In this document: positions 11,901 through 51,200 of the stretch, piece after piece
How the letters are laid out: each line of letters opens with the position of its first letter
Numbering within the stretch: position 1 is the stretch's first letter
From: Gnetum montanum
Taxonomy: Eukaryota; Plantae; Gnetophyta
Reading direction: 5' to 3'
Length of the DNA: 64,000 nt
Assembly: GCA_015680685.1 (NCBI GenBank)
Contig: MNCI01000271.1
Coordinates: forward strand, 93,626-157,625
The notes under the pieces: model-generated
Told to the model about the DNA's origin: nothing
Seen by the model: the letters and a program-made list of their open reading frames with translations, nothing else
The model's database searches: none
Translations under genes and position numbers: made by a program

Positions 11901-12044
11901 TGCGTGTGGCTCCGGCTTGTCGTTTGTGGTGTCGGATTTTTGTATGTGGGTCTCCACCCCCCCTCCGCGGGCCATTTCTGATGACCCTCGAATTGTATAC
12001 TCTTGTACTATAATCTTTCAGTAATACACTCACGAACATTTTCT

Positions 12045-12077
<33 letters not shown>

Positions 12078-16927: not shown

Positions 16928-19900
16928 GGTGTACTTACAGGTTTTGCATCCTCCATGTTGAAACGCTTTAGAACCTTTCCAATGTAATCTTCTTGACTCA
17001 ACCACAAGTTCTTCCTTTTTCTGTTCCTGTAAATATTCATACCAAGAATTTTCTTTTCCTGTCCCAAATCCTTCATAGCAAATTCTTTGCCCATTTCCAA
17101 TTTTAAACGTTTTATCTCTGCTATATCATTTCCAGCAATTAGCATATCATCAACATACAACAACAACACTGTAAATTTACCTGAAACATCTCCAGAAAAA
17201 TACACACAGTGGTCTAGGTTGTTTTTCTGATAAGATAGCTTCTTCATGAAAGTATCAAACCTTTTATACCACTGCCTTGGGGCTTGTTTCAAACCATATA
17301 AACTCTTTTTCAGTTTACAAACCAGACCTGAACCTTGCTGGTCTTCATACCCTTCTGGCTGTTTTATGTAAATTTCCTCCTCCAAATCTCCATGGAGGAA
17401 TGCTATTGTTATATCAAGTTGTTCCAACTCAAAGTCCATGCAGGCCACCAATGATAGCACTAAATGTATAGAAGAGTGTTTTACTACTGGAGAAAAAAAT
17501 TCTTGAAAGTCAATACCTGGTTTCTGTGCATAGCCTTTCACCACCAACCTAGCCTTGAAATGTTTTTCCCCATTTGCTTCTGATTTAATTCTGTATAGCC
17601 ACCTGCACTCCAAGGGCTTTGTCCCATTTGGCAATTGAACTAGCTCCCGGGTTTTGTTCTGTTGGAGTGATTCCCATTCATCATTCATGGCTGCCTTCCA
17701 CTTTGTGGCATCAACATATATCATGGCTTCCTTTATTGTTTCTGGTTCACCACTATCGCTGTAAAGTACATAATTCAATGAGGGAGACTACCTGTTAAGA
17801 TGTCTGGTAGTTCTGGTTGACCTTTTAACCCAATGAGACACATCTATAGCTTGTTGTTCATCATCTTCTACCTCATTTTCTTGTTGTCCTACATTTTCTC
17901 CTTGCTGTCCTAAGTTCTCAGCTTGCTGCCATGTACTTTCAGCATGTTGTCTAAAGTTTCCAGATCTGAAAAATCCATGAATTTCATCATTTTCAATTTC
18001 TTTAGTCACCCTAAAAGGAGTTCTTATGCTTTCTGAGCCATTTCTGTCATTGTCTTTCTTTTGCAGCTCACTAAACATCACATTTTCTTTGAATTTAACG
18101 TCCCTTGATCTCACTACATGTTTCAATTCAGGATCCCAAAGTCTGAATCCTAACTCATCTTCTCCATATCTAACAAATATGCAACTTTTAGCCCTATCCT
18201 CTAACTTAGTTCTGTTTTCCTTTAGAATATGCATAAATGCCACACATCCAAAAACTCTTAAATGACTGTATGAAACGTTTTTACCTTTCCAAACAACTTC
18301 TGGAATAGCATTATCAATTGAAGAATGTGGAGACCTGTTCACCAAATATGCAGCAGTCATAACTGCCTCTCCCCAAAATGTCTTAGGTAGGCCTGCACCT
18401 AGCACAATCCAGCAATGTTCTGTTGCATCTTTCAGCAACTCCATTTTCTTGTGGTATACTAGGAGGGGTACGAATGTGCCTAATTCCTTTGATGTTGCAA
18501 AAATCAGCAAATACTTTAGAAGTGTACTCCCCACCATTATCAGTTTGCAAATATTTTATTTTCAGACCTGTTTCATTTTCTACTTTTGCAACAAATGTTT
18601 TGAAAGCTGAAAACACTTCATTTTTTGATTTCAGCATATAAACCCAAACCTTCCTTGTACAATCATCTATGAAAGTCACAAAATAAATAGATCCACCAAG
18701 AGAAATGGGAACAAACATCAGAATAAACCAATTCGAACTTATTTTTCTTTCTGCTGTCCAAATCCCTACGAAAGTTTACTCTCTTAGATTTTCCAACTAA
18801 ACAGTCTTTGCAATCAGTTTGAGCATAAGAAAATACAGGAATGAGAGTCTAATTTGGAAGTACCTTTAAGCTTGACCAGCCAATGTGTCCAAGATGTCTA
18901 TGTCACACTTCAGAATTTTCTGTATTAGAAACTGTTGCAATGGAGTTGCATGAATTTGCCATTAATGTATATAAGCTGCCCTCCTTCTTTCCTTTCAGAA
19001 TGGTCATGATTCCCTTGGAAATCCTCCAATGTCCACCTCTACTACTAAAATTCAGACCTGAATCATCCACCTGTGGAACTGAAATCAACTTCTTTGTAAC
19101 TTCAGGAACATGTCTAACTTTATCTATTGTCACCTTTGGCATCCTTGCTTGTTGCAGACTTGTACTTCCAATTCCAAGAACTTTTAAAGCTTTTCCATTA
19201 GCAGCATATACAAAACTAGATTCAACTTTATGATAAGATGCAAAACAAGACTTATCTGGACAAATATGAAAGGAGGCACCTGAGTCAATCAACCAGATGT
19301 CACTGCTACATCCATCTACCACCATTGTACATTGTTCTTGAATCAGAAAACTAACATTTTCATCAGCTACATGTACCTCTGATGTTCCTTCTTCTGACTT
19401 CTTCTCCTTTCCTTTATTTTTCTGTGCTTTCCATGCAAAGCAATCCTTCTTCAAATGACCTTTCTTCTTGCAGTACCAGCACTCTTGAGTTTGAGTTCTG
19501 CCATGTGATACTCCTTTGTCCGTGCTTCTCCCCCTACTTGGGAAACGTCTCCTACTTCTACCTCTTTCCTCTGCTACATGAACATTTCCAGATTTAGAAG
19601 ACTCATCTACTCTTCCTTCTGAATCCTGAAGGGTAGACACAACCTGTTCAAATGTCATAGATGAAACACTCATAGAAGTAGTAATAGATGTCACAATTGC
19701 AGACCAGGAATCAAGTAAGGAGTCTAACAAAGCATAGGATTTAACTAAATTTGAAATAACAATTTTATATTCCTCCAACTTATTCAGATTTGCCATCATC
19801 TCATCCAAATGATTTTGAAAAGACACATTAGATCTCTTCTTGCATCTAAAAACTTTCTGATAAATGTGAAAGGTATTCAAACCTGATACTTTGTCAAACC

Positions 19901-20117
19901 TATTCTTCAGCGTTTGCCACAGATCATGCGGATCCATATCAGGTTTGATTGAGGCCAAAATCCCATTGCTTAGGGTTGGATGAATGAAAGATAATGCTGG
20001 TTGAGAAGGTTCTAGGGCCTCTTGGCACTCCTTTTGTGCTAAAAAAGCCCTCATCAAAATGCTCTAAACGTTCCAGTTCCTTCCTATCAATCTTTCCGTT
20101 GTTTGTAGCCTCTCCAT
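16928..20117 (-). pseudogene. copia gag-pol polyprotein (frameshifted, with stops)
   Basis: Gag knuckle CWYCKKKGHLKKDC, protease WLIDSGASFHIC, integrase TDNGGEY and [30 protein letters not shown] and YVDDMLI. Confidence 0.93.
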
Positions 20118-21127: not shown

Positions 21128-23470
21128 TTTTTTTTGGGGAGAAAAGTTGGCCAGATAAATAAATTAAGAATAAAAGAAAATATATACAATCAGGACCTAG
21201 ATCCAAAAACAGGGGAGACACACCCCCTGGGGACTTAATTCTGGAACCCACCATTATGCCTGGGGAACACCCTTAGGCCACAAAAAGCAGAAACCATTAG
21301 AGCAAAATGGGTCCCTGAAAATTGGCCTTTTGCAGCATACCGCATTTGACTAGGAAGCATCCGAGAAACATGAAAACAGATCAGCAGAAAAAACAAAAGA
21401 ACAAAGACATACCAGGACAGTATCAAACAAAACCAACAATTCACCTTAGAAAACCAACCACCATGAACCCAACAGACACCCAGTCAAGAATTTCTATTTG
21501 GTGTTTAGAAGCCATGAATGTAGTAGCCTGCTAGAACCAAATAAATTCCTTTTCCTTCCACTGCCCTTCCTTTGCAGGCTGATTTTTTGTTTTATCCCAA
21601 TGGAACCTAGTAGCAACTGAGCGAATGTAGCATCTCAACGTGTCCCATGACACATTTTTGTTGATGTCCATAATTATATAGGGGTAGCATCCCTCTAGTA
21701 GCCAACGTTTGGCTTCAAACTTGTGAGCTTGATCGAGTCACTTACTCATCTACTGCTCTTCGAAAAAAGTCCTGGCTCTTTGTGCTTTAGATTCTTCCTT
21801 TACATATTTTTGATCCACCTCCTTTTGGAGGATTTTTGCCTAAGCTCTTTCTTCCTTTCCTGCCAGATACTAGCCTCTTGATGCTTGTGTTGTCTTCATA
21901 CCTCCTCGGCCTCCTCACGAAGTTGGCAGCACTTGACCTGGGCCCTTGCTTGAACATCTAGTGCATGTTGGAAGATAACCGCCTTCCATCAAATCCTTTC
22001 CTTCTCATGAACCCTAGCCTTAGTTTCCGCCATTGCCTATTGGAGCCTATCTTCCAGATCATCAGGCCCCTTCCTTCTCTCATCCTAAGCATCCATTGAA
22101 ACCCCAACTTCAAGAACTATTTGATCAGCAAAAGAACAATAGCGCATCATGGATGTCAGATAATTTGATAGTTGATGTCTAGTACCGACGCAAGTCTTTC
22201 CTGACGGACCAGTTGGTAAACTGCCCCAACTTCCCCTTGCGGTTGCGTTGAGGACGAGTCTTGAGAAACCCCCATAGTTGAGGTTGAGGAAGACAAGGCA
22301 CCCTCATGCACACCCCTCCTACAGTAAACATGGGTAAAAGGGACAAGTCAAACAAGAGGTTCCACAAGCTACGCAGCCCACCATAGGGCTAGAATAAGCC
22401 CCAAGGGCCTCCCCTTACGTTCATGGCGCAAAGATGCTAGAAAGAACATTGGGAGATTTACTGGTTGTGCATCCCTCATGTAATGCAGGAAGGCAAAGTG
22501 AGCCTCTTGTAACTTCCATGTGTTGTCGGATTGCACGAAGTAACGATCAACCAACTCAGCCGCCTTTTGTTAGAGTGGAGGTAGAGCAGACCGTGGAACT
22601 TGCCCATTGGTAGTCTTAGGGACAGGCTCGACAAATCTTAGATCTATTGGACAAAGTAGTTTAAGAATTCCTTTTATGGAATTTTTTTAACCTCCCAACT
22701 CAGTGCTGCCCTTTTGGAATTGAACCTATGACATGTGGTTTCCATGTCAAGGTTCTTACAATTCCATTCTCATTCTTTACAATTCCATGAGAGGATCTTT
22801 ATGGTCTACTACGAGCCCTCTATGGTAGATCTCATTTAGGGTTCTTTGGCTACTTAATTTAATATTTTTCTAGATATGTCTTTGGTGTGTCATAATGGTT
22901 GTTGGATGTCCAACCTTGTGCTTGATCTCCACCTCATGGCTTGCCCCAAACAACGGGTAGTTTTTAGAATTTGACACTTGACATTTGGTGAGACACCTCC
23001 TGGGCCACTGTGAGGGGACAACAAACCCTTGCATAGTGGTCATCCATGGTCCCAAAGGAGGAAGCTCTTGCTTGATGAAATCTCTGGGCCTCCCTAAACC
23101 CCCTTCAGTAGCAGCAATGTCCTCATCCTTTATGACCTCATCCATGGGTGTTGTAATTGCCCTGTTAGGTCCAACTTTAAAAGCAAGTTCAACATCAACC
23201 ACAAGCTCTTGCTCTGATTCTACATTTGTCTTTGCCATTTCCTAAAAACGATTCTTTTGCATTAGTTTTGACTTGTCATCCATGGTTGTCCTAGGAGTGT
23301 TCCTGTTTTGACTTTTGAAAAGCTGAGGTCACTAGCCTTGAACCCTCTGGTTGACTTGGAGAGCTACCCCCTCTTTGGGGATGACCTTTAGGTTGAAGAG
23401 GTTATTCTCTCTATTGCTTTAGTATCTTGCAGTCCTTGGTTTGTTGATTCTATTTTCTTTTGAAGAATGA
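21128..23470 (-). mobile_element. L1 LINE internal-deletion derivative B (ORF1 3' end, first ORF2 codons, accessory module, J-domain)
   Basis: T-tract at 21128-21135; ORF1 end and IKILSWNC at ~22800; resumes at FVEPVPKT...LVDRYFVQ...VNLPMFFLASL; coiled coil then YPYIIMDIN...RFHWDK; no EN or RT. Confidence 0.75.
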
Positions 23471-23500: not shown

Positions 23501-25630
23501 CTTTTTTTGAGAAAAGCTCAAGAATATATTATAGCCAAAAAATAGTTACAAACATCAGGAAAGGGGGGAGGAACACCCCCAGAAACAACAACTAGGGGAG
23601 AAGAACACCCGAGAAGGGGTTGGAGCTTCCCAAAAATAATATCCCAAAATAGCTATGTACATTTTCAAGAAATAACAAAAGAGACAAAATGGACCAATCT
23701 TAGGGCCCCAATATACCAGACTTGGCAAAACCTCTTTTGAATCCACTTCCTAAAAACCCCACAAACCAAACTAGACACTCCTACTTAAATCTAGTAAAGG
23801 TTGCCATCAAATAGGATGAGGGAGTTGGTGCAAGGGTAGTGTGGCCTTTCTTGCATGTGGGCTAAGTCTAGAATATCCCTATGGTGCTCGAACACAACAA
23901 AAGCAACAACCTTCTAGAATTCCTTATACTATTCTTCCCTTTGCACCTGCACCTCTACATCTAGGTCTCTAGCCTTGTTTGGGTGGAGCTTGCTAGATGT
24001 GGTTTTGATAAATTTCCTCAACTTGGCCTAGGATGCATTTCTGTTGACACTTATAACCACACATGGGCACTTCCCCATCCGTAGCCAGTGTTGTCTCATG
24101 AGCAACATCTTGATTTCTCTTCATTTGTTGCTCTTCTAGAAAGGCATGGGTTTGCTGCTCTTCCTTCTCATCCTCCTTCTCTTGATGCTCTTGTTCCTCC
24201 CTGTAGAGGTCCTCTCTGATTTGGGCTTGTAGTTGATTCTCTAGCACACTACTGAGCACTAGTTCCCTCAGCTCTTGTTGGGATTGCTTTGCTGGGGCTC
24301 TGTCCCTTTCTTGCAGCTCCTTCTCCCACCTCTATGCTAGCTTTTCCTAGTTCTTCCTTTCCAGCTCCATCGCCCACTTGACCTGTTCTTTGGCCTTTAC
24401 CCTTACCTCAATCTTAGATGAATTTAGCCTCAAGCTCATGGTGGATCTTCTCCTCCGATTGTTGCATTTGTTGTTAAAACGTTAGTTGTTGGTATGTGGT
24501 TGACTCTTGCCAGTCAGAGCACTCCTTGGCCCATAGTAGCCCCTCGGTTTCGTCACACTAGTTGGAGTAGAGGACAAAGATACCCCCTCCTAGCATGGGC
24601 CACACCACTTGTACATTGTGCCAAAAGAGTAGGGCCTCACTGAAACTAGCTCTTGTAGCTTGGCCATTGTCCAAAGGGCCAAAATGAGGCCGAGGTCATG
24701 GCCCTGACTCCCCCAATGGAGGGAGGTGAGGAAGAACTTTGGCAAGTTCACCCATTAGTTGAGCTATAAGCAATGGGGAAATGCAAAATGCACCCCTTGT
24801 AGTTTCTAAATGTTACTAGATTGGATGAAGAACTTGCCCACCCGTCAACGTTTGCTGATTCTATTTACCATAGAATTGACACTTTTTTTTTTTGGGTTGG
24901 TGTAGGTTTGTTTCCAGAGGAGGGTTTGACTCAAGGAGCCCCAACTGAAAAATCTACCCAGGCAAGGCAAGAGCAATGTCAAATTCTACAGTAAGGGTTT
25001 CAACCCTTGCAGTTGTCTCAATCTGGATCTCTGAGACCAAATTGTCCATCTAAAGGATTTGCCATATACAGAAATGGGCAAAGCGAATTCTACTTCTGGA
25101 TGTAGTGAATTTATCAAACAAAATGAACTTGCCAAAAAAAAAAAAAAAAAAAAAAAAAAAAACAAAGAAAACCTAGCAAGGGTTTGTAGAAAGGAGTTGG
25201 ACTAGGCCTCCTAAGGCAACCTAGACTCCTCAATTTAGAGAAGGATGTGGTCAAGCAAATAAGGATCTCTATGGGCTTTGGATGCCAATATGTTAGGGCA
25301 AAACCGTAGTGCCAAAGAACCAGGGCCCAACAAAAGTACCATATCCTTGTCACCATCAAACAAGAAAGCAAAGAGCAGCAAGTTCCTTGTTAGAGCCTGA
25401 ATCTCAACATGAATCTTCCAAGAGGAAGCAACCCACTTCACAAGTTGCTCCAGCCTTGGATGATGTTTGGAAGAGTCAAACTTCTAATAAGACATGTTAC
25501 CAAAGCGTATCCTCCCTTTTAGCTAACAACTCCTCTACTACTTTGATCTATAGCTTGCCCTTGACAAATACAACTTCCTTGATATCCCCATCTCCTAGAA
25601 CCTAGTTCAACATCCTCTTTCGATTCATTG
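23501..25630 (-). mobile_element. L1 LINE internal-deletion derivative C (DUF4283-like ORF1 joined to accessory module and J-domain)
   Basis: T-tract at 23502-23508; RNLLLFAF..DKDMVLLLGP (ORF1) joined near 24850 to VGKFFIQSSN..KLQGVHFAF; E/Q-rich coil; CPCVVISVN...KLHPNK. Confidence 0.75.
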
Positions 25631-29899: not shown

Positions 29900-32800
29900 A
29901 GATAATAGTAAAAATGAGAGCAGCAGCAACAGCGAATGGAGCAGCAGTAGCAACAGCGAATGGAGCAACAACAACAACAACGAATGGAGCAGTAGCAACA
30001 ATAGCGACAGGAGCAGCAATAGGAGTAGGTGCAGGAACCAGAGCAGCTGCAAGCTCAGCAACAAGAACAGGTGTAGGAACCATAGCAACCGCGGCTTGAA
30101 ACCAATGTGCCACTAGCCGGCGGGGGGCAGACGCCTCACGACAAACATGACTTGGCCTGCAGCCCCGGGGGGGGGGGGGGGGGGGNAGCATCGAGGCCCA
30201 CTCCAGGGTTGAGGACACCCTGCACCTTCGGGTTACCCAACCCCCACTTGAGGGGGTCTGAACCATGCAGCGAAGCCTTATCGGCCGCTTTGTTTCCCGA
30301 GGCGCTCGTCCGTGGCTGGACCTAATTCGGCGATGGGCCCAGGAGCAGTGGCATGTGGGGGAAGTAGGGGTCCGCATCCTGTCTGCGGACCTCCTTCTGT
30401 TTATTTTTTCCTCTCGACAGACCAGAGATTCGGTTATGCTGGGAGGCCCATGGTTTTACGGGGCAAGGGGTCTAGCTTTGACCCCATGGCATCCCAGGGC
30501 CCATCGTGAGGTTGACTTGTTTGCTCGAGCCCCAGTTTGGATGTGGGTTTCCAGGATCCCTTTGGAACCTGGATTTCCTGCAGAAAATCGTGGGATTCTT
30601 TGGCGAATTCATCACCTTCAACCGGGTCACGCAGTCAATGGAGCGCATGGGCTTCGTCCGTTTCTGTGTCTGGCGCCGGCTAGCGGAGAAGGACCTCATT
30701 CGGGAGGTCGTTCTGGAACTCCCTGGGGGGGGGGGAGGAAAAACTCCAGGTTGAATTCGAAAACCTGGAGGCGGCGATAGGGCCCAGACGCAGTGCTGGG
30801 GCCCAGGGGAGCAAAACAACCAGCTGCGCACGCTGCGGGAAACCCGACCATCAAGAAGCGGCCTGTTGGGTGCAGGGAGCGAGGCCTCAGAGACCAAGGG
30901 ACCAGGCCAGACAAATGTTCGAGTAGGGACCAAAGCACCCCCTAGAAGATGCCACTCCCTCCCCACCCCCAAAACCAAAATAGACCCNTGGATGCAGCCT
31001 AGTTGTGCGAGGTGGAGAAGGCCGACCTAGCCGGCTGAACGAGAATCGGGCCAGAGGCAAACAGACCCAACGGAACATTGACATGGGGCTCCAACAGACC
31101 CTTCGGGAGGTCTACCAACGTTGCACCCTTGGTTACACATGAAGTTGTTCAGCTGGAATTGTAGGGGACAGGGTACCCCCTATAAAAGAAATGCCCTACG
31201 CAGAATTGTTCGTGATGAAGATTGTGACATTGTTTGCCTCCAGGAGACGAAGCTGCAAGCAATGGAGTCGCACCTTCTCCACTGGGAAGGTTGGAACACC
31301 CATGTGCACCCTTGTCTGGGCCGGGCTGGTGGACTTGCCATACTGGCCCGCTACGCCATGATTCTCATGGATGCGTCGTAGTGGGCCATCATTGTCCAGC
31401 TCCCCTCTCAAGGGGTTTGGTTGACTAATTTCTATGGAGCACAAAACTGGGAGCAGCGGTTACACGAGTTGACATGGGTGGCAGTGCTGATTCCGGACCA
31501 TCAATCGTGGATTGTGGTGGGGGATTTCAACCAACACCTCCACCCTTGGGAGAAATCCGGGGGGGTTGCCCCCCGTCCACCAGGTGCACATGAATTCCAG
31601 ACCTTTCTGGCAACCTTCTCCCTAGTGGACCTGCCCATTGAGAACTAACGCTTCACTTGGAGTAATCGGAGGAAAGGCCTGGACTACGTCCTCACCTGAA
31701 TTGATCGAGTATGCGTTAGCTCTGACCTCCTCCTCCATTCCTTTGTCCATGTTTCGGGATAGTAGCGGGTCACGTCAGACCACCGCTTGCTAGTCTGTTC
31801 TATCGGGCCGGATAAGCCCCGGGCCCCATGATCGTTCTGTTTTGAAGCTGCTTGGTTAGCCAAGCCGTGGTTGAGGCCGTTGGTGGAGGACATTTGGGCA
31901 GACTACCGGCCTGGCCATGGGGATCCCTGGAACTTCCTTAAGGAGGCCTTACTTCGTCTGAAGTGGGCCATCCGGGCCCTACCTATGGATGATAAGTTCT
32001 CCTTCCGAACGGGCCTGCAGACACTCCGGGATTAGCTTGGCCAGATCCAGGCCCGGTAGGAAGCAAGGGAGGACCTGCACGTGGAGGAGCAACACACGTT
32101 GCAGCAGCTCCAATCCCTTGACCTGGAAGAAGAGACATACTGGTGGCAACGTTCCCGGGTTCGATGGATCAGGGAGGGGGACATGCAAACCAGATTCTTC
32201 TTTGCCATGGCTAAGACACGTGGGGGGAGCCAACCACGCTATCTTCGCAACCAGGACAGGGAGACAATTGATGATCCGCAGTGAATTGCAAATGAGGTGG
32301 CGCAATACTAGGGCGGGATCTGGGCCAAACGCCCCACCAGGCCCATCTCGGTCCATGTGACGCGAGTGCTAAGCGAGCACGACAATGTGCGATTGCTGGC
32401 CCCCTTCTCTTGGCAGGAACTCATTGCTACGATCAACAACATGCCGGGAGGAAAAGTGCTTGGTCCTGATGGCTGGAGCCTTGAATTCTTTAAGATGTTT
32501 CTGGATATTGTGGGATCCAATATCCTAGATGCGTTCAATCTCATGCTGGCCAAAAGGCAGGTCCAGAGAGAACTCAACTATTCCTGTATTGTGTGCATTC
32601 CGAAGCAATTTGAAGCACATCGCCCTGAACACTTTCGCCCTATCGGAGTATGCAACGTACTCATTTGGATCTTCTCCAAGTTGTTGGTGCATAGGCTTGC
32701 GCCACTCATGCCCAGGCTTGTGGGGATCAACCAGGTGGGTTTCGTGCAGGGCCGGAGCGTTCAGGATCATATTTTCCTCATGCAGGAGGTGCTTCAGTCG

Positions 32801-32970
32801 CTTTGAAGTTCGGGTTTCCCTGGGCTTTGCCTCAAGCTTGACATTACTAAGGCATATGACACACTCAGCTGGGAGGCATTGTTGTCCATTATGCACTTGA
32901 AGGGGGTCGATCAGCAGTTCATCCAGCTATGCATTCACATGTAGTCCTCGGCCGGTTTCTCCTTTGACGT

Positions 32971-33003
<33 letters not shown>

Positions 33004-35833
33004 TCTCATCTCTAGGTAGGGGGCTGATGCAAGGGGACCCACTCTCACCCCTCCTCTTCATCATTGCCATGGACTTAATGCAGCACTATTGCATCACATT
33101 CGAGGTGGATGGTTTGGACATTGCTGGGGTGGCATGTCGGGCCGAACACTATGCGGATGATACGATGCTACTCAGTAGGGCGGCGGTCTCGTAGGCACGA
33201 TGCATCAACGTTGCTCTGTCTCGCCTAGCTGATGAGTTGGGGCTGGAGATCAACCGGACCAAATCTTCAGCCCATTTCATTAATGCTGATGAACAAATTA
33301 AAAATCGGGTGGTACAAATCTTGAACATCCTGCCAGGGATGAGCAATGACACCTATCTGGGCATCCCCCTCTTCCGGTGGGGGCAAACCATGGCATGGGG
33401 CCCGCTGGTGGAAAAAATTGAGAGAAGAGTGGGCCACTAGGCAAATCGATTCCTAAGCCGCAAAGGACGCCTGCTCGTGACAACGAGAATCCTCATGGCA
33501 ATCGCTCGTTTCGTGGTGGTTGTGCCCACCCCCCCTAACGCCATCATCAATGCAATTAACACGTTGATCCATAGCTTCATTTGAGAGGGGGGCAATGGGG
33601 GGAGCAAGATCCTCTTGGTCCACTGGGAGTGGGTGGTGTGCCCCTGGAATGCGGGTGGATTGGGCATCACGTCCTTCAAGGACGAATTGATGCTGGGGCA
33701 ACAACGGTTGGTGCTTCGGTTTACGCACCCGCACAGAGAACCAATCCCGTGGATCCGCATCATGAATGCAAAATATCTGCGTTGGGAAATGGGGGCGCGA
33801 GATTCTAGGCCCTGGCAAGCACTGTGCTGGCACGCATGTGTGATGCAGGCTCGGGGATGGTGGGGCCTCGAGCCGCACGCCCTGCTGACCACCAAATACC
33901 CCAAATCGTCGACTGGCAGCAGATTTGGCAAGGGTGGCTGCTCGAGAAAATTAAAATATTTCATTGGCTGCTCCGATGGGACATGCTACCCGTGCGTGCC
34001 CTCTTGCGACGGCGCGGGATTCTGCAGCACGACACTTGTCCATCATGCAGTGTAGCAGCAGAGACGGTGCAGCATTTTGCATACGACTGTGTGTGCATGC
34101 GCGCCACATGGCGACCGGCGACGGTGCCCCTTGATGCGTCTCATAGGCGATTCTTGGGCCACGCTACTTTTATGGGTAGCGTGAAAAGCACAAAACAAGA
34201 TTGTTTTCCTGCAGAAACGGCGCCCCCCCCATGATTGGTCTTCCAGGCTCTCCACGCATGGAAAGAAATCGAGGCGACGATGGGAATCACGCCTACATTT
34301 GAGCCAGATTGCGTTGTGTTCCAGGAGGACGAAGAGCTCTGGCAGATGGTGACCCAATGCAGCTGGTCTAACCCTCTGCAACGACTGGTCGGGGATCCAA
34401 ATCTGGCAGACGACGCGTTCTTCTCGAACTGGGCTGATGATCGCACCTTTTTTCGAGGCCGTGAAATTTTGATCATAGAATCTTCAATCACCGATTTTCT
34501 GGGGGCATAGATCGTTGGTGAGGTAATCCTGCCTTCCACCCGCGGCCTGTAAGACGCAGAAATGTTCTTTGATGGGCCCGTGCCTCGAACCAAGAGTTGA
34601 CAAGTGCCCAGATCTTCCCTGCCCCGCCTTTGGGCCCGGGGAGCAGATTTGGTGGACAAATTTTTTGTCCAATTTAGCAACGGTTCCAAGCTACAGGGCC
34701 TACACTTCGCTTTTCTGCGTTGTCTCAAGTTGGGTCACCAGGTCAACCTCTTGTGCTTTTTTCTGGAGGCCCTCCTGCTCAAACAACGTGGCCGCCATTT
34801 TGGTTTAATTCTTGCCCTATGGCGGGGGGTAGAGGGGGGCAGCACCCATCGTCCTCTGCTCCTCCACGGGGGGTCTCCCCAAAGCACCCCCCCCGCAGCA
34901 AGGCCCCAGGACCCTATGGTTTTGCCCGGACAGGGGAGCCGCTGGTCCCATTGGGCTTCCACCTTTACGCGGGGCCGAAGGACCCAACGGGAGCGGTGCG
35001 CCCCCGCTCGCCTTGACAGGCTAGTTTCCCCCCCACCAGAGACCTCTGGCCATAGGAACTGGAACGAAGAACTTCAGCAGGCCACGCAGAGGGCCGCGGA
35101 CGAGGCATGGGAGGTTGAGAGGAGGGAGTGGGAAGCCAAAAGACATAAAGCCCTTGCACAGGCCTGGGCCGACCTGGAAGCCTAGTTCTCTGAGCGAGAA
35201 TAGGAGCGGGTGAGGCAGCAGGACCTCATGACCGAAGTTGCCAGGGCTCGCCTAATTGACGAAATTTGGGCCCAAGTGCGGGAAGAGTTGATTCAAGAAG
35301 ATGTGGCCTAGGGACAACGCGAGCAGGAGGAGGAGGACCAGCGGCAGCTCGACTGAGCTCATGAGCACAACACTCGATAGTGGCTAAGGGGGGGGGGGGG
35401 GGGGGGGGGCAGTGCCCGTACCTCATTCTTGGCATTAGTTGTGAGAGCTCCTAGGCTGAGCTTAGATGCCATATCCGTCGAACCTCGATGCGTTTCCATC
35501 TGGATGTAGGCACCTCGTAGGCGGACCGGAGCCGACGGGAGTCAGCAATGCAGGGTATCCAGCAAGCAGCCAGTTTCATGGACATGGAGGACCATCGGAA
35601 CACTCTGGATATCCTCCATGAGCTGGAGTGCCCCAACTGTGCTTGCCGACGGCTGCCGACGAACCCATAAGGGGGTTTGTTGGCCTCGGGTCAGTGTAAG
35701 ATTTTTGGTTTTGGGAGCTGGTTTGTCTAATTTTGGGGATTCTTCTCTACCATGGGGGGGCCATTCCTGATGGCCCACCATTTGTAGTCTCTTGTACTAT
35801 AGTTTGCGTTTCTCAGTAATATAAAACCTTGTC
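29900..35833 (+). mobile_element. full-length L1-clade LINE A (best-preserved copy) with extended ORF2
   Basis: ORF1 29914-31142 (Ala/Thr-rich N-terminus, DUF4283-like region, CARCGKPDHQEAAC knuckle); ORF2 from ATG 31139; G/T-rich 3' UTR; TSD and poly(A) not found. Confidence 0.92.
31139..35670 (+). pseudogene. LINE ORF2: APE endonuclease, RT, zf-RVT, transposon-protein-like domain, coiled coil, J-domain
   Basis: SWNCRG, CLQETK, GDFN, IDRV, SDH; GPDGW, FRPIGVCN, QGDPLSPLLF, YADD; zf-RVT W...KIKIFHW...CPSC...ETVQH; 33824-35385 is a single frame broken only by stop codons; J-domain at 35413-35670 after a 22-G run. Confidence 0.85.
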
Positions 35834-37697
35834 AAATCACAACTCCTATGAGCTGTGTGGATTATAATCTCAAATTTATTTTCAGGCCCTCCATCCCTCC
35901 TTAACATAGATTTGATTATTAAAAATTCAGACTCTACTTTCAGACTTTGTTTACCCAATTTTGGATGCTTGAAAATAGAGGAAAACATTGGCTAATTGTC
36001 CTATGAAACCTGAACTATTATAACTCTCTCCATTGTATGTTGTGAGCTAGATCTTATATGAAATTTAAAATACACTTGAGATGCACGGTTACTTCTTTCA
36101 TTTATATGATGGGAAGATTGCATTTTGGAAGTGTAGAAGTCTCCTTGTAGTAAGTCTTTCATTACATAAATGTTTGTACATTTTTTCATACTTAGATTTT
36201 TCTTTCATGCAAAGTAAATATTGTTTATTTATTTTTGCTACAATGTGCTAACCTCATTTATTTATTAGCAATTACATTGTTTTATTTGTTCAAAGAAAAG
36301 AAAGAAAATATATATGTGATCATGTATGTTTATTTGCTTTCCATAAAATTAACCCAGATGAATTATGATTAGAAGCCCTTTGGGCCCTAGGATAATCAAT
36401 TTACCTTAACTCATAGTTAGTAATTAGGTGGATGATACATTTGATTGGTGTGCATTGTGTGAACCATGTAGTATTTTTAGGGATCATTAACTAATCGTTC
36501 TAATAATAATATATTCAACCATATACCTTGAATGGATGGGTTGCATTGTTTATTTATTTTGCATGCACACATATGCTTACTTTGGCTTAATATCCTAAGT
36601 CATTGGACCTAAGGGGGTTGGGTTGCACAACACCTAAAGGTTTTCAATAATGCCTGCATCATTTGTAGGTGTGTACTCAACTCACGTATGATCCATGGTC
36701 ACCTATTTTTGGGGTATATGAGGTTTAGTCCAAAAATGATGGTTGAGCTAAGCTTTGTTTGTGTAGTTTAGAACCTAAAGATAACCTAACTCACGGCCAG
36801 ATGGTGACCAAATTCATTGAGTTGGATGGCCCTCAATGTGGGAATGCAATGCCACCTTGCATGAGCAAAGTTGAAACCTATACATTTTTGATTCCTAGTC
36901 ATTGTTTGAAGCCTATTATAGATTAAATGATTTTGTATGGTGGAAACATAGTGGAGGGCTAGGAGTACGACCAACCACATTCGTTGGTGTTGCTTGTAAA
37001 ATAAAACTTGAAACAGGTAAGTCACACAAATGTTTGATGTTTTTTAGCTTGGCAAGTGATGAGAAGTGTTAGTAGTCACCTTGGATGATGCTAGTATTTT
37101 TAGATGTCATAGTGTTCCTAAAGTTAGATATGCAATAGATGCATCAATCCATAGAATTATGAGAAGTGACAAGGTCTTATTCTATCAACTTGTTAAGTCT
37201 AATGAGAGGAGGAGGTATGTAGGACTTGTAATCATCCCATCATTATGAGTCACATCCTTATTAGTTGCTAATGTAAGTATAAACCCATGTTTTTAGAGGA
37301 TTGGAAAAGAAAAAGAAAATTGTGCTGATCTTTAAAGGGTGGTTATTTAGGGGTCCTACACAAATTGGTTATCTAGCACATTGGAATTTCTGATAACCTA
37401 TATTTACAATTAAATAAATACAAATATAACTAAAATTAAGATATAGAGAAAAATCTATTAGCCTAGAATTAAGGCAAATAATATAAGTGCAAGTACACAC
37501 AAAAATGAACCCAAAGATATTTGCTTGATCTCAAATGAATTTACAAAAGTAGAGTTATTTATGTTTGAAATCTTTTATAAAGAAAATAATTTTTAATATT
37601 AAAATATCATCTATTCGAATGATAATATATGTTAAAATAATAATTTTTTTTCAAATCTATAACATGCATCAAGATGAAGATAGGTATTTTACATTCT

Positions 37698-42143: not shown

Positions 42144-45100
42144 CTTGGAAAATGATTGAGAGATTTTATTCCAAGAAGAAGATGTACAAATGTACACAAA
42201 ATTCATTGATCTAAATATGCAAAACCCTCCCATGACTCAATGATCACCTGCAACGTTTATCATGATCACCAAACACCTGCATAGTGCAACTCCTTACCAC
42301 ACTACCCCAAGTCCTCAACCCAAAGTCTCCACCCTTCTTCAAAAGGATGGGGGACCAAAATTAATGGCAACACCCCTTAATGACTAGGAACCCCCTCCCC
42401 CCATCAGCGAGACTGTGCCACTATCTGACTACATTTGGCCTCGAACCACTGTGTCCTGTAGTCTCAGCGAACTGCAACATGGACCCCAAACTCTCAGCGA
42501 TAGCTAAGGTCTCTGAAGCATCTATGCCAGCACTGCGGTGCAATTGATCCCAGCCCAAGCATCAGTCATTGGTTCTATGCTTTGAGCTGTGCTAGGCCCA
42601 TCTAGTGCTTTGTAATCATCGCTTCCATTCACCTGAGGTCCTTTAAGCATGACACATTCACTTCCCTTCGGGCCTCCTACCTCATGTCCTCCCACCAATG
42701 CTGCCATTGCGCGTGCTCCTCCAACTGTGCCTACTCGGCTGCCAAGCGACACTTTGTTGGTAGCCGTTCCTATGCCTGCTGCATGGTTGTGAACTGTTTC
42801 GCTTTTGCACCCTCCAACTTAGGGCCATGGTTGTTTTGTGCTTGCACCTTGGCTGTTTGCTTGTGTCGTCGCCTCCGTTGGTATTCGATTGTTGGTGCCG
42901 GGTGAGCAACTAGCACACCCCTGCGTCAAAGTGCAAGTATCACCCTTGGGTGCTACCCTGGCCGTTGCCTTCGAAGAGATTCCCAAAAAAAATGGGGCAG
43001 ATTAACAGGAAACCTTGTTGGAGGTGCTTGAGAAAGGTGAAATGCACTCCCACTAGTTTGTTTTGGGGGCGGGGGGTACCTAGACTGTACAAAATATTGC
43101 TCCACCAGGAGCGCTACATCCGTCTAGACCCTTTGTAATCTAGACTTCCGAATGTGCTCGCTAGTAGTCTTGGGAATGGGTCCTATGAAGAACTCCCTCG
43201 CATTAGTCTGTGCCCTTGCAATCGGTGCCACAATCTCCTCTGCATCCTCCACTCCAAGCGCAATAGCTAGCGCTTGCACCATGACCTTAATCCTCCTGCC
43301 CCTGTACTATGTAGCGTCTCCCACCCAGTTGTCATAGAATTGCTAAGTGGGCAAGTTTGGTTCACTTTCCAAGCATTTGAGCATCTCCACCCATCCCATC
43401 CTTTCAATCAATGTCCACACCTTAGGCAAACTGGAGAATTCCATCCATGATGGTTCAAAAAGCAGTCATTGTTCCATGGCCTATGTGGCCTCCCTCCACA
43501 GCACATGTGCTTCTCGAACCATCGTCGTGGCCGTAGGGACCGGCTGCCCCCGAAAAATTAGGGAATTCCTACATTTCCACAGGACCCACAACGTGGCAAG
43601 TTGTAATGAGTCCTTGTGGCACCCTGTGGTGGGAGAGAGATTTGCAGCCAACCACACCTCTTGAGAGAATCAACATCCATAAATAAGATGGTGCAATGTT
43701 TCGAACACCGCTAGCATGGACAGTTGGCTTCCAACCGAATCCCCCTCTCTTAATGTGGCCCTTACTGGTAGCGCCTTGTGTTTGAGCAACCAACTGAATG
43801 CCTTGACCTTCTCGAGGAGATGGTCTTTTCAGATCTCTACCCACCCCTCCTCTTGCAGGTACCAGAATTTAACTAGCTTCTTTGGGTGCTACCCCAATAA
43901 TCCAAGCTACTCCACCAGACCAGCATGGCGGCAAAAATTTTTCCAGAGCTAGGAGCAATTATGTTGAGCCTCCCATCTTCGACATTTCTACCACAAAATC
44001 TACACCCACGATGTTGCTCCGGCCATCTGCCCTTGTGCTTGTTTAGCAGTTGGTGTGTGCCCAAATCCATCTCATCTCCAAACTCGAGAATGCCAATGCC
44101 CCCCGCTAGTTTGGGGTGCGTTGTCACCATCCACAACACCAAATGCATCTTTCTGCCCCCTTTGCTGCCTAACCACACAAACTCCCTCACTATGTGATCA
44201 ATTTTTTTTACCACTGTGGCTAGTAGCATTGCCATAGATGCCGTAAACTGGGCAATTGCCATCAGAATTGTCGCATCCAGCACCATCTTCCCTTTCCTAG
44301 ACAGAAAATGGCTGGTCCAAAGTGTGGTCTGTTGCTGGACCAGCTCCAGCAATTCCTGCCAAGTCATTTGCCTATTCCAATCAAAAATAGGCATTCTTAG
44401 GTATGTGTCATGGGTTTGGCCTGGTAGAATGCCTAACGTCTGTATAATCTTGGCTTGCACCCTTCCATCTGTGTGTGTGAAATAAATGACAGACTTCCCT
44501 TTATTGACTTCGAGGCCTACCTCACGCTACATCCTCTCCATCGCCTGTAACAGAGCCGCAACTTGCGACACTGCAGCCCTGGAAAAAACCATTGTATCCT
44601 GCACATAGTGGGTTGCCACACTGTGTACCCCAACAACATGAAGTCCCTAAACACCTTCGATGAGGCAATAAACAGGAGTGGTGACAACAGATCACCTTGC
44701 CCCAATCCACACCCTATTCTAGCAAACTCGCATAGCCTCTCATCGATGTCAAGAGAGTAGCGACCACCTCGTTGCATTTGGATATAGAGATTGATGAACT
44801 TGACATCAAACCCCTTCTCCATTATTGCCGCTCGGAGTGCCACCCAGCTCACAATGTTGTAGGGCTTGGTGATGTCCAGTTTGAAGCACATGCTCGAAAA
44901 TTTGGCCACCTTAGCCGAGTGCAGGATCTCTTGCAAGAGCAACACTTGGTCTTGTAAATAACGTCCCTTAATGAACCCTGCCTTATGCTTCCCAACCAAT
45001 TTCTCCATTAGTGGTGCAAGGTGCCCAACTAGCATCTTGGAGAAAACCTACAGCAAAGTAGACCCCAATGGGTCAAAAATGCCCCAGTGATGATGGGTTA

Positions 45101-48023
45101 GGGACCTTGGGCAGCAACACTACTCTTGAACAGTTGATTGCCCTTCTAACTTGTTGCCAACTAAGCGTATTGTTGTATGTGTCCAACAAATTAGGTCCTA
45201 GGAGATCCTCATACTCCCTAAAAAATTCAATTGACCATCCATCTGGTCCTAGAGCCTTGTTGATTTGCATGGATTTCATAGCCCCCCGTAGCTCCTCCCG
45301 TGAGAAAGGACGTGGTAAATTAGAGTTATCAACATTTATAATGATCCTTGTGATTGGTAGGGAGCTAGGTTCTGTAGCCTGCCATCTCCATATGTCTTCC
45401 CAAAACTTCTGCAAGGTGTCCAGCTCCCTCCTGTGACTTTGTGGGCCTCCCCCACTGATGCCCTCTAGCAGATACTGGAGTTTGTTCTTGTGGGCCCTAT
45501 TGTGTTTGCTTGTGGCAAATAAGAATCGTGTATGCTTGTGCCCTTCCCGTAGCCAAGTCACCATCAACTACTGTCTCCAATAGCTCTCTTCCTCCCTATC
45601 AAGCTCCTGATGTTCCCTAAACAACTCTTGTTTTTCAATGTTCTAGGCAGCCCTTGTTTCTTGTAGCCTTTGGATCTTCTACAGCTCCTTTTGCACATGC
45701 TATTTGTACCCTCAAAAGCTGTACTTGTCATTTGATGCTTTGGCCTTGATGCCATTTTTTAAAGCCCATAGACCATCCCTCAGGAATTGTCGGGGCTCCT
45801 GCGCCCCAGTACAAGTTTTCTAGATTTTAGCCACCATTGGTTTCAACCAGGCTTTGTGTAACCAGGATTGCTCGAATTTGAAGGGCTGGGGCTCTTGACC
45901 CTCCTCCAACTAGAATTGGCACAAAATGGACCAGTGGTCCAATGCTTGTCTCACTCCTTTCCCTCCGTCGTGATGTTGTACTCTAGCATGAGGTGCTGGC
46001 TCACCCATATTCGATTGATCCTGGTCTAGACGCGATTAGGCCCCCGCCGACGGTTACTCCAAGTGAATTTACACCCTAGAATCTCTAGGTCAATCAACTC
46101 ATATTGATGAAGAAATTCAATGCATGCCTCGGCCCCCGGTGGATCAGTGCAATCATTTCCAAATTTCTCCTAGCAATAGGGCCTCTGGTTGAAATCCCCC
46201 AGTAGCATCCATCTAGCGGTATTGGGGATGACCCTAGCCACATGTCAGAGTTCTTGGACCCAGATCTTCCAATTTTGCACCCTATAAAAATTTGTTATCT
46301 AGAGATCCACTTGTGGCATGTAGACAGTTTGACTCTAATCAGATTCATCCACAAAGTTGATTGGGATTCTGGCTAGAATGGCCAAACCTCCTGCGTGGCC
46401 CCTACTAGGCACAATGTGGGTTGTCCATCCCTTCTAGATTAGCAACTTCCATTCGGTCCTTTGGACCTTTGTTTCTTGTAAACAGACCACCTCGCAACCT
46501 ACCTCCCTAACTATCATTCGTAGGGTATTTTGTTTGTATGGGGTACGTTAGCCCTGATAGTTTTAGGTGAGGATCTTCATAGAGATGTAGACACACATTG
46601 GTGATACACCTCTTGTAGCATTTGTTGCACCCCCAAATCTAGATCCAGTTGCATGGATTTCTTGTGCATTGTTGTCTTATCAGGCCGACCAATCTTGGTG
46701 TTCAGCCTGAGCACCTTCGCTCCGAGCATGCCCTTCGCTTGCTTGGGCTGTATGTCTTTCATTTTTGGCTTAGTAGAGCCCCATCCCATTGTAATCCATT
46801 CCCCCAATGGGGGTAATTGTAGCACTGAAGTCGGCAGCTCGATAACCTTTGGAGTCAACATAGTGTGAGGAAAGCCAGGGACCTTTGCCATCCCCCCATC
46901 CGTAGATGACCCCTTTGATTTGCCACATGCCAACAACGGGTATTCAACACCCTCCTCCACTTGAGGTGGCAGATCTTCCTTCATTAGTCGCTGTCCAGTC
47001 CTGCTTCCCACCGCGGTTTGGGGTTGTGGGTGTTTGTACTGTGGTCCTCCATTTCCCGTTGAGGACGACCCTACTTCCAGGTCTAGCCCATCCTACCCAC
47101 AAGACTCTAGCCCTAAGCAGCCTCGATTGGCCCTCAATAGTGTTTTGATTTTGAGTGCCTTTTCCCATAGATCTTACATCCTGGATGCTCCTCCTTGCAC
47201 ACTGTTGACAGGTTCTCAAATTTAATGCATATCTTTTCTTTCCTGCCAACAGTGTCTAGCATGACCTCCGCAACTCTATCCTTTGTGCTCAGTGATCTCC
47301 AAATGTAGAAACATGCATACGCCATTTGGTCCATGGACTTGGTAAATGCATCGAACTTAATAAAATCTCCAAATAGCCCTGCCAGAGACTTCAAAGACCC
47401 TAGTTCCTAGTATTCCAATGGAAAATCAAACAACTAGATCGAAATCGGTGCACGATTGAAGAGGCATTGATCTCAATGTGTGCTAGGTCTCCAGGGAGCT
47501 AGGGCTAGTCTATGGGCTCCATAGAACCACAGACCCCCTAGCAACACCCTGTCTGTTTCCTCCATTGTGGAAAAAGTGAGTAGTAGCCGATTGTTTGCTA
47601 GACTCTAAATGTGGACGTCCTCGAACCCCCAGGTCATGCGGACCCATTTTCAAATGAGGTCCGTATGCAACCTTACTCCCTCAGAAAGAAATTTCCCCAA
47701 CAGACTCCTCTCCAGTTCTTGCATGGCCTCCTTGGGTGGACGCCCAACCCTGACCCGCATGGCCGCTCCTTCCCTCGAGTAGGTGTCAAAATTGACACCA
47801 TTGCCCATCTGCGAGGGCCCTCTAATCTTTGTTGCTTGCACTTCGTCCTCAACAATCACCTGGCTATGCATGGGCTCGTCAATGATCTGGCTAGTCCTCC
47901 CACTCGTGACAGGCGTTGCTTCCGCTCCCATCACTGCTACCGCTCTCGCTTCGGTTGCCGCTCTTGCTCCCATCATTTCAGCCGTTGTTCCCTTAGAAAA
48001 CCCAAAACAAACTCCACCAATTC
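42144..48023 (-). mobile_element. full-length L1-clade LINE H (accessory domain and coiled coil, no J-domain)
   Basis: Perfect 15-bp TSD aacatcataatggat at 42129-42143 and 48024-48038; ORF1 from ~47976; ORF2 ATG at 46580 (MKILT...CLQETK, GPDGWS, QGDLLSP). Confidence 0.92.
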
Positions 48024-48248: not shown

Positions 48249-51200
48249 GAGAAAGAAAACTCATGGGCGGAGGTAGTGAGGAGCCGGATGTGGGCAGTAG
48301 TGGCAAGGACCCAAGATTTGGAGGGTGGATGGACAAGGGGCCATTTGACCACCATGGTGATTCTGGGAGGGGAGCTAGGGGGACAATAGAGATGAGGGGG
48401 ACAAGGTTATGAAGGGCGAACGAGGGGTTTTTGTGTAGAAGGCTTCAATGGAGGAGGGCTGCAATGTTGGTGGTGGTCTAGGGATTGGCGGTAATGATTC
48501 TGTCTCTCATTCTAGAGGTGTGTTGTGGCTATAGGTGTGGGGTCCATTGCTAGATGGACTGCATATCATGGAGTTGCCTTATTGGAAAGTTCATCTCCTT
48601 TGGGGCTAGGTGGAGACTAGATTTGGTTAAGCATTGGGTCATAGCCTTGTAGGGGACAAGTGATGTGCAAGTTAGGCCGTTTGTTAGGGATCTCCTACTC
48701 TTTGTCTTTCAGAGTATGGAGGAGTGAGATCATGTTTTGTTGGGGGGACCATGGTTTTTCAGAGCTAGGGCTTTAGCCTTAACTCATTGGCAGCCTATAT
48801 CACATAGGGATCCCAATCTCTTCTCGAGGTCTCCCATTTAGTTCAATGTGTCGGGGGTGCCTTGGGAGCTTTGGACAGTTGAGTTCTTGAAGATGCTTGC
48901 AGGTCTCTTTGGCGAGTTCATCTCCTTTGACAAATTCATGGTGTTGAAGGAACAAATGGGTTACGGAGGATTTTGTGTTTGGAGGTCGTTATCCCCTAAT
49001 GATTTGTTGTGGGAGGTCATCTTGGATCTTTTGTTTGGGAAGGAAGAACTACATGTGGAATATATGAGAATGTTCCCTTGAACAAATAGGCCTTGGTCTA
49101 GAAGGGGGCCTCAATGTCTTGTGATATCTGTGGCAAGGACAACCACACCACTAAGGATTGTAGAGTTCACGCAGATGCATTTGGTCCTAAGAACAAACTG
49201 GATACATATGGTTGATTGTTGGTGGGGAAAAAGGGCCAAGTCTCCCTGGTTGTTTCTCTACTGGAACCTATTGTAGGGGGTTCTCGGCGTAGATCTAGTG
49301 CCAACCAATTGGGAAACATGCCTCCCCTTTGCCTCCTATTCTTGCTAGTACAAGTGTTCTGGTTGTCTACATGCCACCCCCTGGTGGGGAACTCCCACCT
49401 CTTGGGGGTTGGGTGTCGGCAATGCATGGTTTGACTTTGTCACCATTGGTGCTAGTTGCTTGCAAGATCCTAATGGAAGATGATCAAGGCTCTATGGTTT
49501 CCATAGGGTCCCAAAAGGTAAGGCGACTAATGGGACAAGAAACAAGAAATAAAAAGACACAATAGGATATTGATTTGGGATCTCAAGAGACCCTCAAAGG
49601 GGTTTACAAAAGGAGGTCTACCAGGAGACCATGAAGATCTTGTCATGGAATTGCATGGGACATGGTACCTCTTACAAACATACCTTGAAAGAATTAGTGC
49701 AAAATGAAGGTTGTGACGTGCTGTGCCTCCAAGAGACTAAACTCCGCACCATACATTGTGACTCTATGCATTGGTAGGATTGGCACTATACTTTATGGAT
49801 TGTTTTGGCAAGGCAACTTGGGGGTGTCGGCAGTGGCTAGCCATTGTCTCTTGCACATGTTTTAACATTGTTGGTGAATCTACTTGGAGCCTTATGGTGT
49901 TTTTGCTACCATGAGGAATCTGGATTACGAACTTTTATGGCCCCTAGAATTGGGTCTATTGGTTATAGTAGCTCCATAGGATTGTTGGGCATGTTTTGGA
50001 TCCTCGTGTATGGATGCTGATTGGAGACTTCAATCCATGCCTGTATGCTTGGGAAAAGATTGGGGGAGGCACCGAACCTCTATCGGGGAGTTAGGTGTTT
50101 GTGTAATTCTTCCAAACCTTTGACTTGGTTTACATAGATATCAAGGAATGCCTTTTCACCTAGAGCAATAGAATAAAAGGGTATGACTGGGTCATGTCCA
50201 GGATTGATAGGGTTTGGGTTAATATGGAAATTTTCCTTCACCATGAGGTCTTTGTTACTGGCCATGAGCAATGGGCATCCAATCACCAGGCTTTGATCTG
50301 TATAGTCCGCCAATTGGATAGACTTGGGTATGTTTTGTTTAGATTCGAATGGTCATGGCTAATGAAACATTGGCTGCATAAGTTGGTGACAGACATCTAG
50401 GGAGATTACCCTTGGTAGACTTACCTAAGGGATTTCGAGAAACATGGGCTTGCTCATCTCAAAAAGGAGATGAAGCATGCAAATGTTTGACAAATATTCT
50501 ATCACAAGTTCTCATATAGTGTTGTAGCAAAGACTACTTCGTATCTAGGCTAGATAGGAAGTTGAGGGATTGCTGGTGGAAGAGGAGCACGAGATCCTGG
50601 TCACTCTGCAACAACTATCAGAAGAAGAGTAGTAGTACTGGAGAGAGGATTCATGGGTTAGGTGGCTTAGGGAGGGTGACAAAAATACTCACTTCCTTTT
50701 TTGCAGTTGCTAAGGCTAACAATCAGTCAAAAAAGATTTGGAACGTCTTGTGGGTGGGGGAATCTCCTCCATGACATGCACATCGTCCAAGAGATGCAAA
50801 GGTATTGGTCCAAGATTTGGATTGGGGGAGAATCCTTCCCTATCTCTGTCCAAATTCCAAAGGTTGTCGGGGAGGATGATAACATGAGGCTCCTTCCACC
50901 CATCACTTGGCATGGATTATTTGATGTCATGGCCTTCGTTAAGAGTGGTAAGGCTCTGGGGTTGGATGGTTGGCCTATTGAGTTCTTTTGCAAATTGTTT
51001 GACATCTTCGGGAGAAATCTCTTGGATGCCTTCAATCTCATGTTGATGTAGGGACAAGTTAGGCATGAGATTAATTGCTCATGGATCGTGCTCATCCCAC
51101 CAAACTTACCAACTTCAGATCCATTGGAGTGTGCAATATGTTGCTTAGGCTATTCACCAAAATTCTGGTTAGACACCTCCAACTACTAATGTTGTCATTG

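Follow-up and report, generated by a model that had tools for sequence, protein, structure and literature searches.

We analysed a 64-kb window of the Gnetum montanum genome (the whole stretch from position 93,626 to 157,625 of contig MNCI01000271.1, assembly GCA_015680685.1; coordinates below are those of the window), in which a GC-rich island at ~30000-35800, set within AT-rich DNA, is a decayed plant L1-type long interspersed nuclear element (LINE), referred to here as LINE A. Its last coding segment, at 35413-35670, was read in an initial annotation as a DnaJ/Hsp40-like J-domain closing the second open reading frame (ORF2). The window holds seven such tails, namely that of LINE A and six diverged copies (B to G), each located 3' in LINE sequence; a further element, LINE M, is described below. 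The features of LINE A are, from 5' to 3':

30265 to 30780, plus strand: ORF1 fragment with DUF4283 (Pfam PF14111, E 2.1e-12)
31121 to 31381, plus strand: apurinic-type endonuclease (APE) piece of ORF2 (Pfam Exo_endo_phos, E 8.8e-12)
32357 to 33194, plus strand: reverse transcriptase (RT), broken by a 31-G run at 32971-33001 (Pfam RVT_1, two pieces, E 5.3e-4 and 2.8e-6)
33824 to 34234, plus strand: zf-RVT zinc-binding domain of ORF2 (Pfam PF13966, E 7.3e-13)
34235 to 34825, plus strand: conserved middle domain of the ORF2 extension, without a Pfam family (tblastx aligns it with B, G, D, E and M, at 32-63% identity)
35057 to 35385, plus strand: charged, E/R/Q-rich linker in the ORF2 frame, a putative coiled coil by appearance, with five stops (translation)
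35388 to 35409, plus strand: run of 22 G that puts the J-domain out of frame with the ORF2 extension
35413 to 35667, plus strand: decayed J-domain and short C-terminal tail (translation; J homology at family level)
35452 to 35454, plus strand: in-frame TAG, which is TGG (Trp) in most other copies (reads; Trp in copies B, D and E)
35497 to 35505, plus strand: His-Leu-Asp (CAT CTG GAT), occupying the site of the His-Pro-Asp (HPD) motif
35518 to 35520, plus strand: in-frame TAG, which is CAG (Gln) in most other copies (reads)
35617 to 35646, plus strand: His/Cys-rich motif after helix IV (H-x3-C-P-N-C-A-C), recurring in relatives
35671 to 35823, plus strand: 3' untranslated region (UTR) of the LINE, cut at 35823/35824 (its end matches the LINE 3' terminus at 11969-12012 at 84%)

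LINE A is assigned to the L1 clade by its domain set: the APE endonuclease is followed by RT, zf-RVT follows RT, and ORF1 is of the plant type with DUF4283. The conserved 3' UTR of ~150 nt downstream of the TAA places the J-like segment inside the element, as its last coding module. A 5'-truncated LINE 3' end of ~170 nt with a 32-A tail (fragment H, 11900-12077, plus strand) shares a 3' UTR motif with LINE A, which itself lacks the last ~16 nt and the poly(A) of the family; in reads, other copies run on after 35824 as ..TCCCGACTACTTTCTC and poly(A). The poly(A) 3' end is thus seen in fragment H, in the read ends after 35824 and in a metagenome contig described below (L001). Truncation at the 5' side is evident in fragment H, and copy C also appears cut on that side. 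The DNA adjoining LINE A (35823-36300) is itself repetitive and of high copy number, matching hundreds of contigs in each run, and A-rich sequence precedes its other copies.

Translation of 35413-35672 on the plus strand yields a string identical to that given by the initial annotation, with the terminal TAA at 35668-35670. Both TAG codons, the His-Leu-Asp triplet and the upstream poly-G frameshift that it had reported are present at the positions listed above; the frame running from zf-RVT (33824) to 35385 has remainder 2 modulo 3, and the J segment, after the 22-G run, has remainder 1. The Cys/His motif that follows the J-domain recurs in copies C, G, E and L001, as QPNCHC, RPHYPC, RPWCPC and HCHEH, and the site is also found in copy F; the motif may form a small zinc-binding tail.

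The assignment of this segment to the J-domain family draws on three kinds of comparison. The J-domain pattern noted initially was recovered by Pfam, in which PF00226 is the best family for three independent stop-free pieces, belonging to copy B (profile positions 2-45, E 0.044, only family matched), copy F (positions 3-24, E 0.0037, only family matched) and the C-terminal half of the L001 domain (positions 36-63, E 1.6e-4). Because PF00226 was fixed in advance as the target, the p-values for that single family are of the order of 1e-6 to 1e-8 (about 2e-6 to 7e-9). HMMER aligns copy B with J-domains such that the spacing from PY..LG to H-x-D is the same, ungapped. When copy B was compared with the PDB by phmmer, six of six matches were J-domains. 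A profile built from seven N-terminal halves of LINE tails (A4) matched 47 PDB sequences at E<=1, every one a J-domain protein (best E 1.1e-4; 23 matches below 0.01); these include CbpA, DNAJA1, DnaJ, DNAJB1/6/8/9, DNAJC5/10, Sis1 and Sec63, among others. A smaller LINE-tail profile gave 16 J-domain matches out of 17. The nearest named clusters by ESM features of copy B are likewise DnaJ (score 0.85), which we treat as a lead only. The MAFFT alignments of all short fragments (A1) and of C-terminal halves (A3 and A5) placed helix III off by nine residues and were not used as evidence, and a word-based protein homology search with pieces from copy C (94 aa) and L001 (71 aa) returned no candidates. 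On these sequence comparisons, homology of the J segment to the J-domain is established at family level. A chance resemblance, arising in a non-coding or otherwise coding 3' region, is suggested by the two J pieces of LINE A itself, which gave no Pfam match at lengths (21 and 49 aa) too short for the purpose. Pfam, phmmer and the LINE-tail profiles nevertheless all return one and the same family, so the resemblance is not by chance, and the segment is conserved as protein at 12-48% identity; we regard a coincidence of this sort as practically negligible.

The sister copies of the J tail in the window are as follows:

21444 to 21689, minus strand: copy B, H-W-D, one stop, linker and J-domain sharing a frame (Pfam DnaJ E 0.044; PDB matches)
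3248 to 3503, minus strand: copy C, H-L-D, one frameshift and one stop, nearest to LINE A (sequence comparison)
53911 to 54097, plus strand: copy D, H-F-D, frameshifted, tail of a LINE at ~48577-54100 (sequence comparison, tblastx)
61088 to 61350, plus strand: copy E, stop-L-D, frameshifted, tail of a LINE at ~58092-61350 (sequence comparison, tblastx)
57573 to 57798, minus strand: copy F, divergent and more canonical, H-M-D, one frameshift (Pfam DnaJ E 0.0037 for the piece 57703-57939; local hidden Markov model)
23794 to 24072, minus strand: copy G, H-P-N, three stops (sequence comparison)

In the local alignments of these copies each stop or frameshift was set to X, and all searches were run with unaltered stop-free pieces. 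The identity of 12-48% between the J-domains implies that synonymous sites are saturated and that decay after insertion would dominate any ratio of nonsynonymous to synonymous change. The His and Asp that flank the Pro site of HPD, and the basic helix II, are conserved among the relatives. E/Q/K-rich stretches precede the J-domain in copies G, B, D, E and L001, as the charged linker does in LINE A.

The segment 35411-36300 was compared, at >=80% likeness, with contigs of three DNA sequencing runs from three related species (X1-X3) and one oligo-dT RNA run (X24). About 2000 contigs matched per DNA run, which makes the family very abundant. At 35453, G replaces the A of LINE A for 4508 of a depth of 5581 in X1, and likewise in X2, X3 and the RNA run, restoring TGG (Trp); at 35518, C replaces T in 190 of 257 (X1), likewise in X2 and X3, restoring CAG (Gln). 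With Trp and Gln codons in the majority elsewhere, the two stops in the J segment of LINE A are private decay, by G>A and C>T. Other copies also read CAG where LINE A has TAG at 35373. From the RNA run, 852 reads matched at >=80% and none at >=99%, in both orientations; some family members are transcribed, and the LINE A copy, which is dead, shows no sign of transcription.

The same reads bear on the junction at the poly-G run. Immediately before 35413, other copies, including 84 RNA reads, have ..AAC ACC CGA CAG TGG CTA AGA GGG GGG CGA with 6-8 G in place of 22, and a run of this length puts ..NTRQWLRGGR-CPY.. in frame with the ORF2 extension; this holds for DNA from two species as well as for the poly(A)-selected RNA. 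This matters for the proposal that the J-like segment is foreign to the LINE, either as a host DnaJ fragment carried in by 3' transduction or as an assembly chimera formed at the poly-G. Such an origin could account for the presence of a 22-G run exactly at the junction, and for three more G-runs (11 to 31 G) in LINE A, one of them followed by an N. However, none of the window's six other copies has a long G-run at this junction, which they otherwise share, copy B has linker and J-domain in one frame, and the junction is bridged with 6-8 G by DNA reads of three species and by RNA. Moreover, the conserved 3' UTR of the family lies downstream of the J-domain, and L001 has the same architecture. 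A foreign segment is thus a very remote prospect. The four G-runs of LINE A (30167-30185, with an N at 30186; 30725-30735; 32971-33001; and 35388-35409) are either real homopolymer expansions or artefacts of assembly or polishing; the run at 32971-33001 lies inside RT coding sequence.

The J-domain also has a distant counterpart outside the window. An exhaustive search with a 194-aa piece of the middle domain against 1.84 billion representative proteins returned a single match, P0001 (86 aa, E 5.8e-5), encoded on the JGI metagenome contigs L001 (Ga0115844_100297) and L002 (Ga0068627_1000112). These represent one 13.5-kb contig recovered in two metagenomes (99.99% identity), eukaryote-like and with 34% GC. 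The decayed, AT-rich LINE of L001 has its modules in the same order as LINE A, comprising RVT_1, zf-RVT, the middle domain, an E/K-rich stretch and a J-domain at 7188-7502, and it has the family's 3' end, ..TTTTCTC and poly(A), ~150 nt 3' of the J-domain. Identity across APE and RT is ~37-43% among A, D, E and L001, all four of which end in a J-domain, and ~32-43% when LINE M is included. Such low RT identity, combined with a common J tail, indicates that the J-domain travelled with RT through old lineages. LINE M (~42165-47817, minus strand) possesses APE, RT, zf-RVT, the middle domain and a complete 3' end, with neither charged linker nor J-domain, so the module is not universal in the family; the lineage of LINE M either predates the gain of the J-domain or has lost it. 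By comparison of these elements, the J-domain is native to the LINE family, rather than an acquisition of LINE A alone.

The HPD motif varies among the copies. LINE A reads H-L-D, which the initial annotation derived from HPD by a single C>T change (CCG>CTG). That derivation gains from contigs of two other species (X2 and X3), which read F-H-P-D (TTT CAT CCT GAT) at this site; it is weakened in that T>C at 35501 is absent from the 40 best-supported read differences, such that HPD is perhaps not the majority state among the close relatives of LINE A, and in that Pro is retained in only one of the seven window copies (G, HPN, with CCA). The middle codons at the site are CTG in A and C, TGG in B, TTT in D, CTA in E and ATG in F, and the L001 loop reads Y-Y-L-D-K (TAT TAC TTG GAC), which is derivable from His-Pro-Asp codons by C>T. 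A J-like domain without HPD function, serving as a helical interaction or dimerisation module with no stimulation of Hsp70, would explain why six of the eight relatives read H-L-D, H-L-D, H-W-D, H-F-D, H-M-D or Y-L-D, and cells do have J-like domains that lack HPD. However, CTG, CTG, CTA, TTT and TTG are all reachable from CCN by C>T alone, the main route of decay of these copies, although TGG in copy B and ATG in copy F are not single C>T steps from CCN. The Pro codon of copy G and of the two other-species contigs, and the conserved His/Asp flanks and basic helix II, also speak against a loss of HPD function. We therefore consider a domain that had dispensed with HPD improbable.

The relationship of the J-domain to ORF2 varies between copies. 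The initial annotation had ORF2 end in a J-domain, and the domain is indeed the last coding module of an L1-type LINE, as opposed to flanking DNA; fusion to ORF2 may not extend to all lineages, given a stop codon directly before an ATG ~25 codons upstream of the J-domain in three of them. The corresponding sites are:

21732 to 21767, minus strand: copy B, CAG TAG ATG
53831 to 53866, plus strand: copy D, CAA TAA ATG
61023 to 61058, plus strand: copy E, CAA TAG ATG
24107 to 24142, minus strand: copy G, sense codon at the same site, CAA CAA ATG

The occurrence of stop-ATG at one and the same site in B, D and E raises the alternative that the J-domain is unfused in at least some lineages, and made as a small ORF3 protein by termination-reinitiation at this junction. 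Copy G has a sense codon (CAA) at the site, however, and lineage A has no Met there. Each of the three stops is one C>T change from the Gln codon of its own lineage, within a Gln-rich stretch in which a third to a half of Gln codons are already stops, and by a rough estimate (~0.06) three coincident stops are not very unlikely. In reads of lineage A, the frame is open over the 10 codons before the J-domain. An ORF3 of this kind is, in our assessment, unlikely, with roughly the weight of one serious minority option.

Taken together, 35413-35670 is probably the decayed C-terminal J-domain of a plant L1-type LINE, in a copy that is dead; the domain would belong to the family and have been inherited with its RT, and we infer that in active elements it would stimulate Hsp70. 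Several observations weigh against this reading. The PF00226 matches are partial and all fall under the 27.8-bit cut-off, coming as they do from pieces of broken domains with no intact copy, and LINE A's own pieces gave none. The C-terminal-half profile A3, built on a mis-registered MAFFT alignment, found nothing in the PDB. AlphaFold2, given the 68-aa stop-free piece of copy B together with A4, returned a low-confidence model (mean predicted local distance difference test score 61.8, predicted template modelling score 0.34), with helices where expected. To these are added the J-less LINE M and, at the HPD site, the scarcity of Pro, the codons of copies B and F that C>T does not readily explain, and the missing T>C at 35501.

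In J-domains generally, the HPD loop and basic helix II dock on Hsp70, trigger ATP hydrolysis and lock the chaperone on a nearby client. An intact element of the LINE A family would comprise ORF1 with DUF4283, an ORF2 of endonuclease, RT, zf-RVT, middle domain, charged linker, J-domain and Cys/His tail, a ~150-nt 3' UTR and poly(A). LINE A was inactivated by TGG>TAG, CAG>TAG, probably CCG>CTG (HPD to HLD), and a change in G-run length. In active elements, the J-domain would use its HPD loop to stimulate the ATPase of host cytosolic or nuclear Hsp70, and Hsp70 loaded in cis on the nascent ORF2 protein or ribonucleoprotein (RNP) might aid folding, RNP assembly, or remodelling during target-primed reverse transcription. 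The position of the domain at the end of ORF2 favours such cis-chaperoning, since its nearest clients would be the element's own polymerase and RNP. Interference with J-protein/HSP70-dependent silencing at methylated DNA is a more speculative possibility. The fuller proposal, that an abundant and transcribed plant L1 lineage with a distant relative elsewhere has long carried a functional Hsp70 co-chaperone (an HPD J-domain, fused to ORF2 or as ORF3) that chaperones its RT-RNP in cis or disturbs silencing, is more tentative, and we place it a little short of an even chance.

The initial annotation knew of no described L1 ORF2 with a J-domain, and full-text literature searches, of incomplete coverage, likewise found no retrotransposon-encoded J-domain, two incidental co-mentions proving irrelevant on inspection; as far as the literature was searched, this would be the first J-protein encoded by a retrotransposon. 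The LINE J-domain is presumably of host origin. The best PDB matches of profile A4 are the J-domains of CbpA, DNAJA1, DnaJ, DNAJB9 and DNAJC5. Like class C (type III) J-proteins, the LINE tail has only the ~65-residue J-domain and lacks the G/F and zinc-finger regions found in DnaJ; unlike in them, the domain is attached to a retrotransposon polymerase, or else encoded directly behind one, and has a short Cys/His motif after it. Polyomavirus large and small T antigens have an N-terminal J-domain and offer a parallel as a selfish replicon that encodes its own, in that case with HPD and acting through host Hsc70; they differ in belonging to a DNA virus, in the N-terminal placement of the domain and in the absence of a reverse transcriptase. 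Dependence on host Hsp70/Hsp40 is a property of hepadnavirus reverse transcriptases and, as interactome data indicate, of the proteins of human L1.

Extra modules have been acquired by other LINEs. A 2013 study by Smyshlyaev and colleagues reportedly described plant L1-clade LINEs with an Archaea-like RNase H after zf-RVT. These share with the LINE A family the ORF1, the APE-RT-zf-RVT order, a poly(A) 3' end and an extra module after the zinc-binding region, whereas the added modules of the LINE A family are an unnamed middle domain, a charged linker and a J-domain. The middle domain occupies the position where other plant L1s have RNase H; Pfam gives no family for 34235-34825, and Pfam scans of the ORF2 extension of LINE A detected no RNase H (RVT_3). 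Insect R1/TRAS LINEs are reported to have gained a C-terminal, viral-type superfamily 1 helicase domain in ORF2 (PMC4686597, PMC5563155). They resemble the LINE A family in having acquired an extra C-terminal ORF2 domain and kept it through diversification, and differ in clade and host kingdom, their addition being an enzyme of viral origin and that of the LINE A family a co-chaperone module. On the host side, the Arabidopsis MBD5/6 complex, by which methylated transposons are silenced, includes the J-domain protein SILENZIO (PMC8616336; PMC10651127). It compares with the LINE tail as a J-domain protein acting with HSP70 at methylated plant transposon DNA, and contrasts with it as a host repressor that is not encoded by an element; a link to the LINE tail through mimicry or competition is speculation.

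If the proposed function is correct, an element-borne J-domain would make the dependence of RT on Hsp70/Hsp40 genetically tractable, with the HPD loop as a single-motif switch for asking if the loading of chaperone is what limits the assembly of LINE RNPs or their integration. It would also constitute a new class of accessory module in non-LTR (long terminal repeat) retrotransposons, beside RNase H, helicase, esterase and PHD, and one would have to ask whether, in plants, it interacts with the silencing of methylated DNA that depends on J-proteins. In annotation, the scattered 'DnaJ-like' fragments of the Gnetum montanum genome are to be read as retrotransposon tails, not as chaperone pseudogenes.

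The middle domain recurs elsewhere in the window at 22372-22569 (minus strand), 24671-24841 (minus), 43085-43522 (minus), 52708-53295 (plus) and 59879-60407 (plus), and in the metagenome contig at L001:5266-5580. Separately, ORFs of 541, 384 and 249 aa at 16054-20057 (minus strand), beside a 706-N gap (16222-16927), may represent an LTR-retrotransposon polyprotein.

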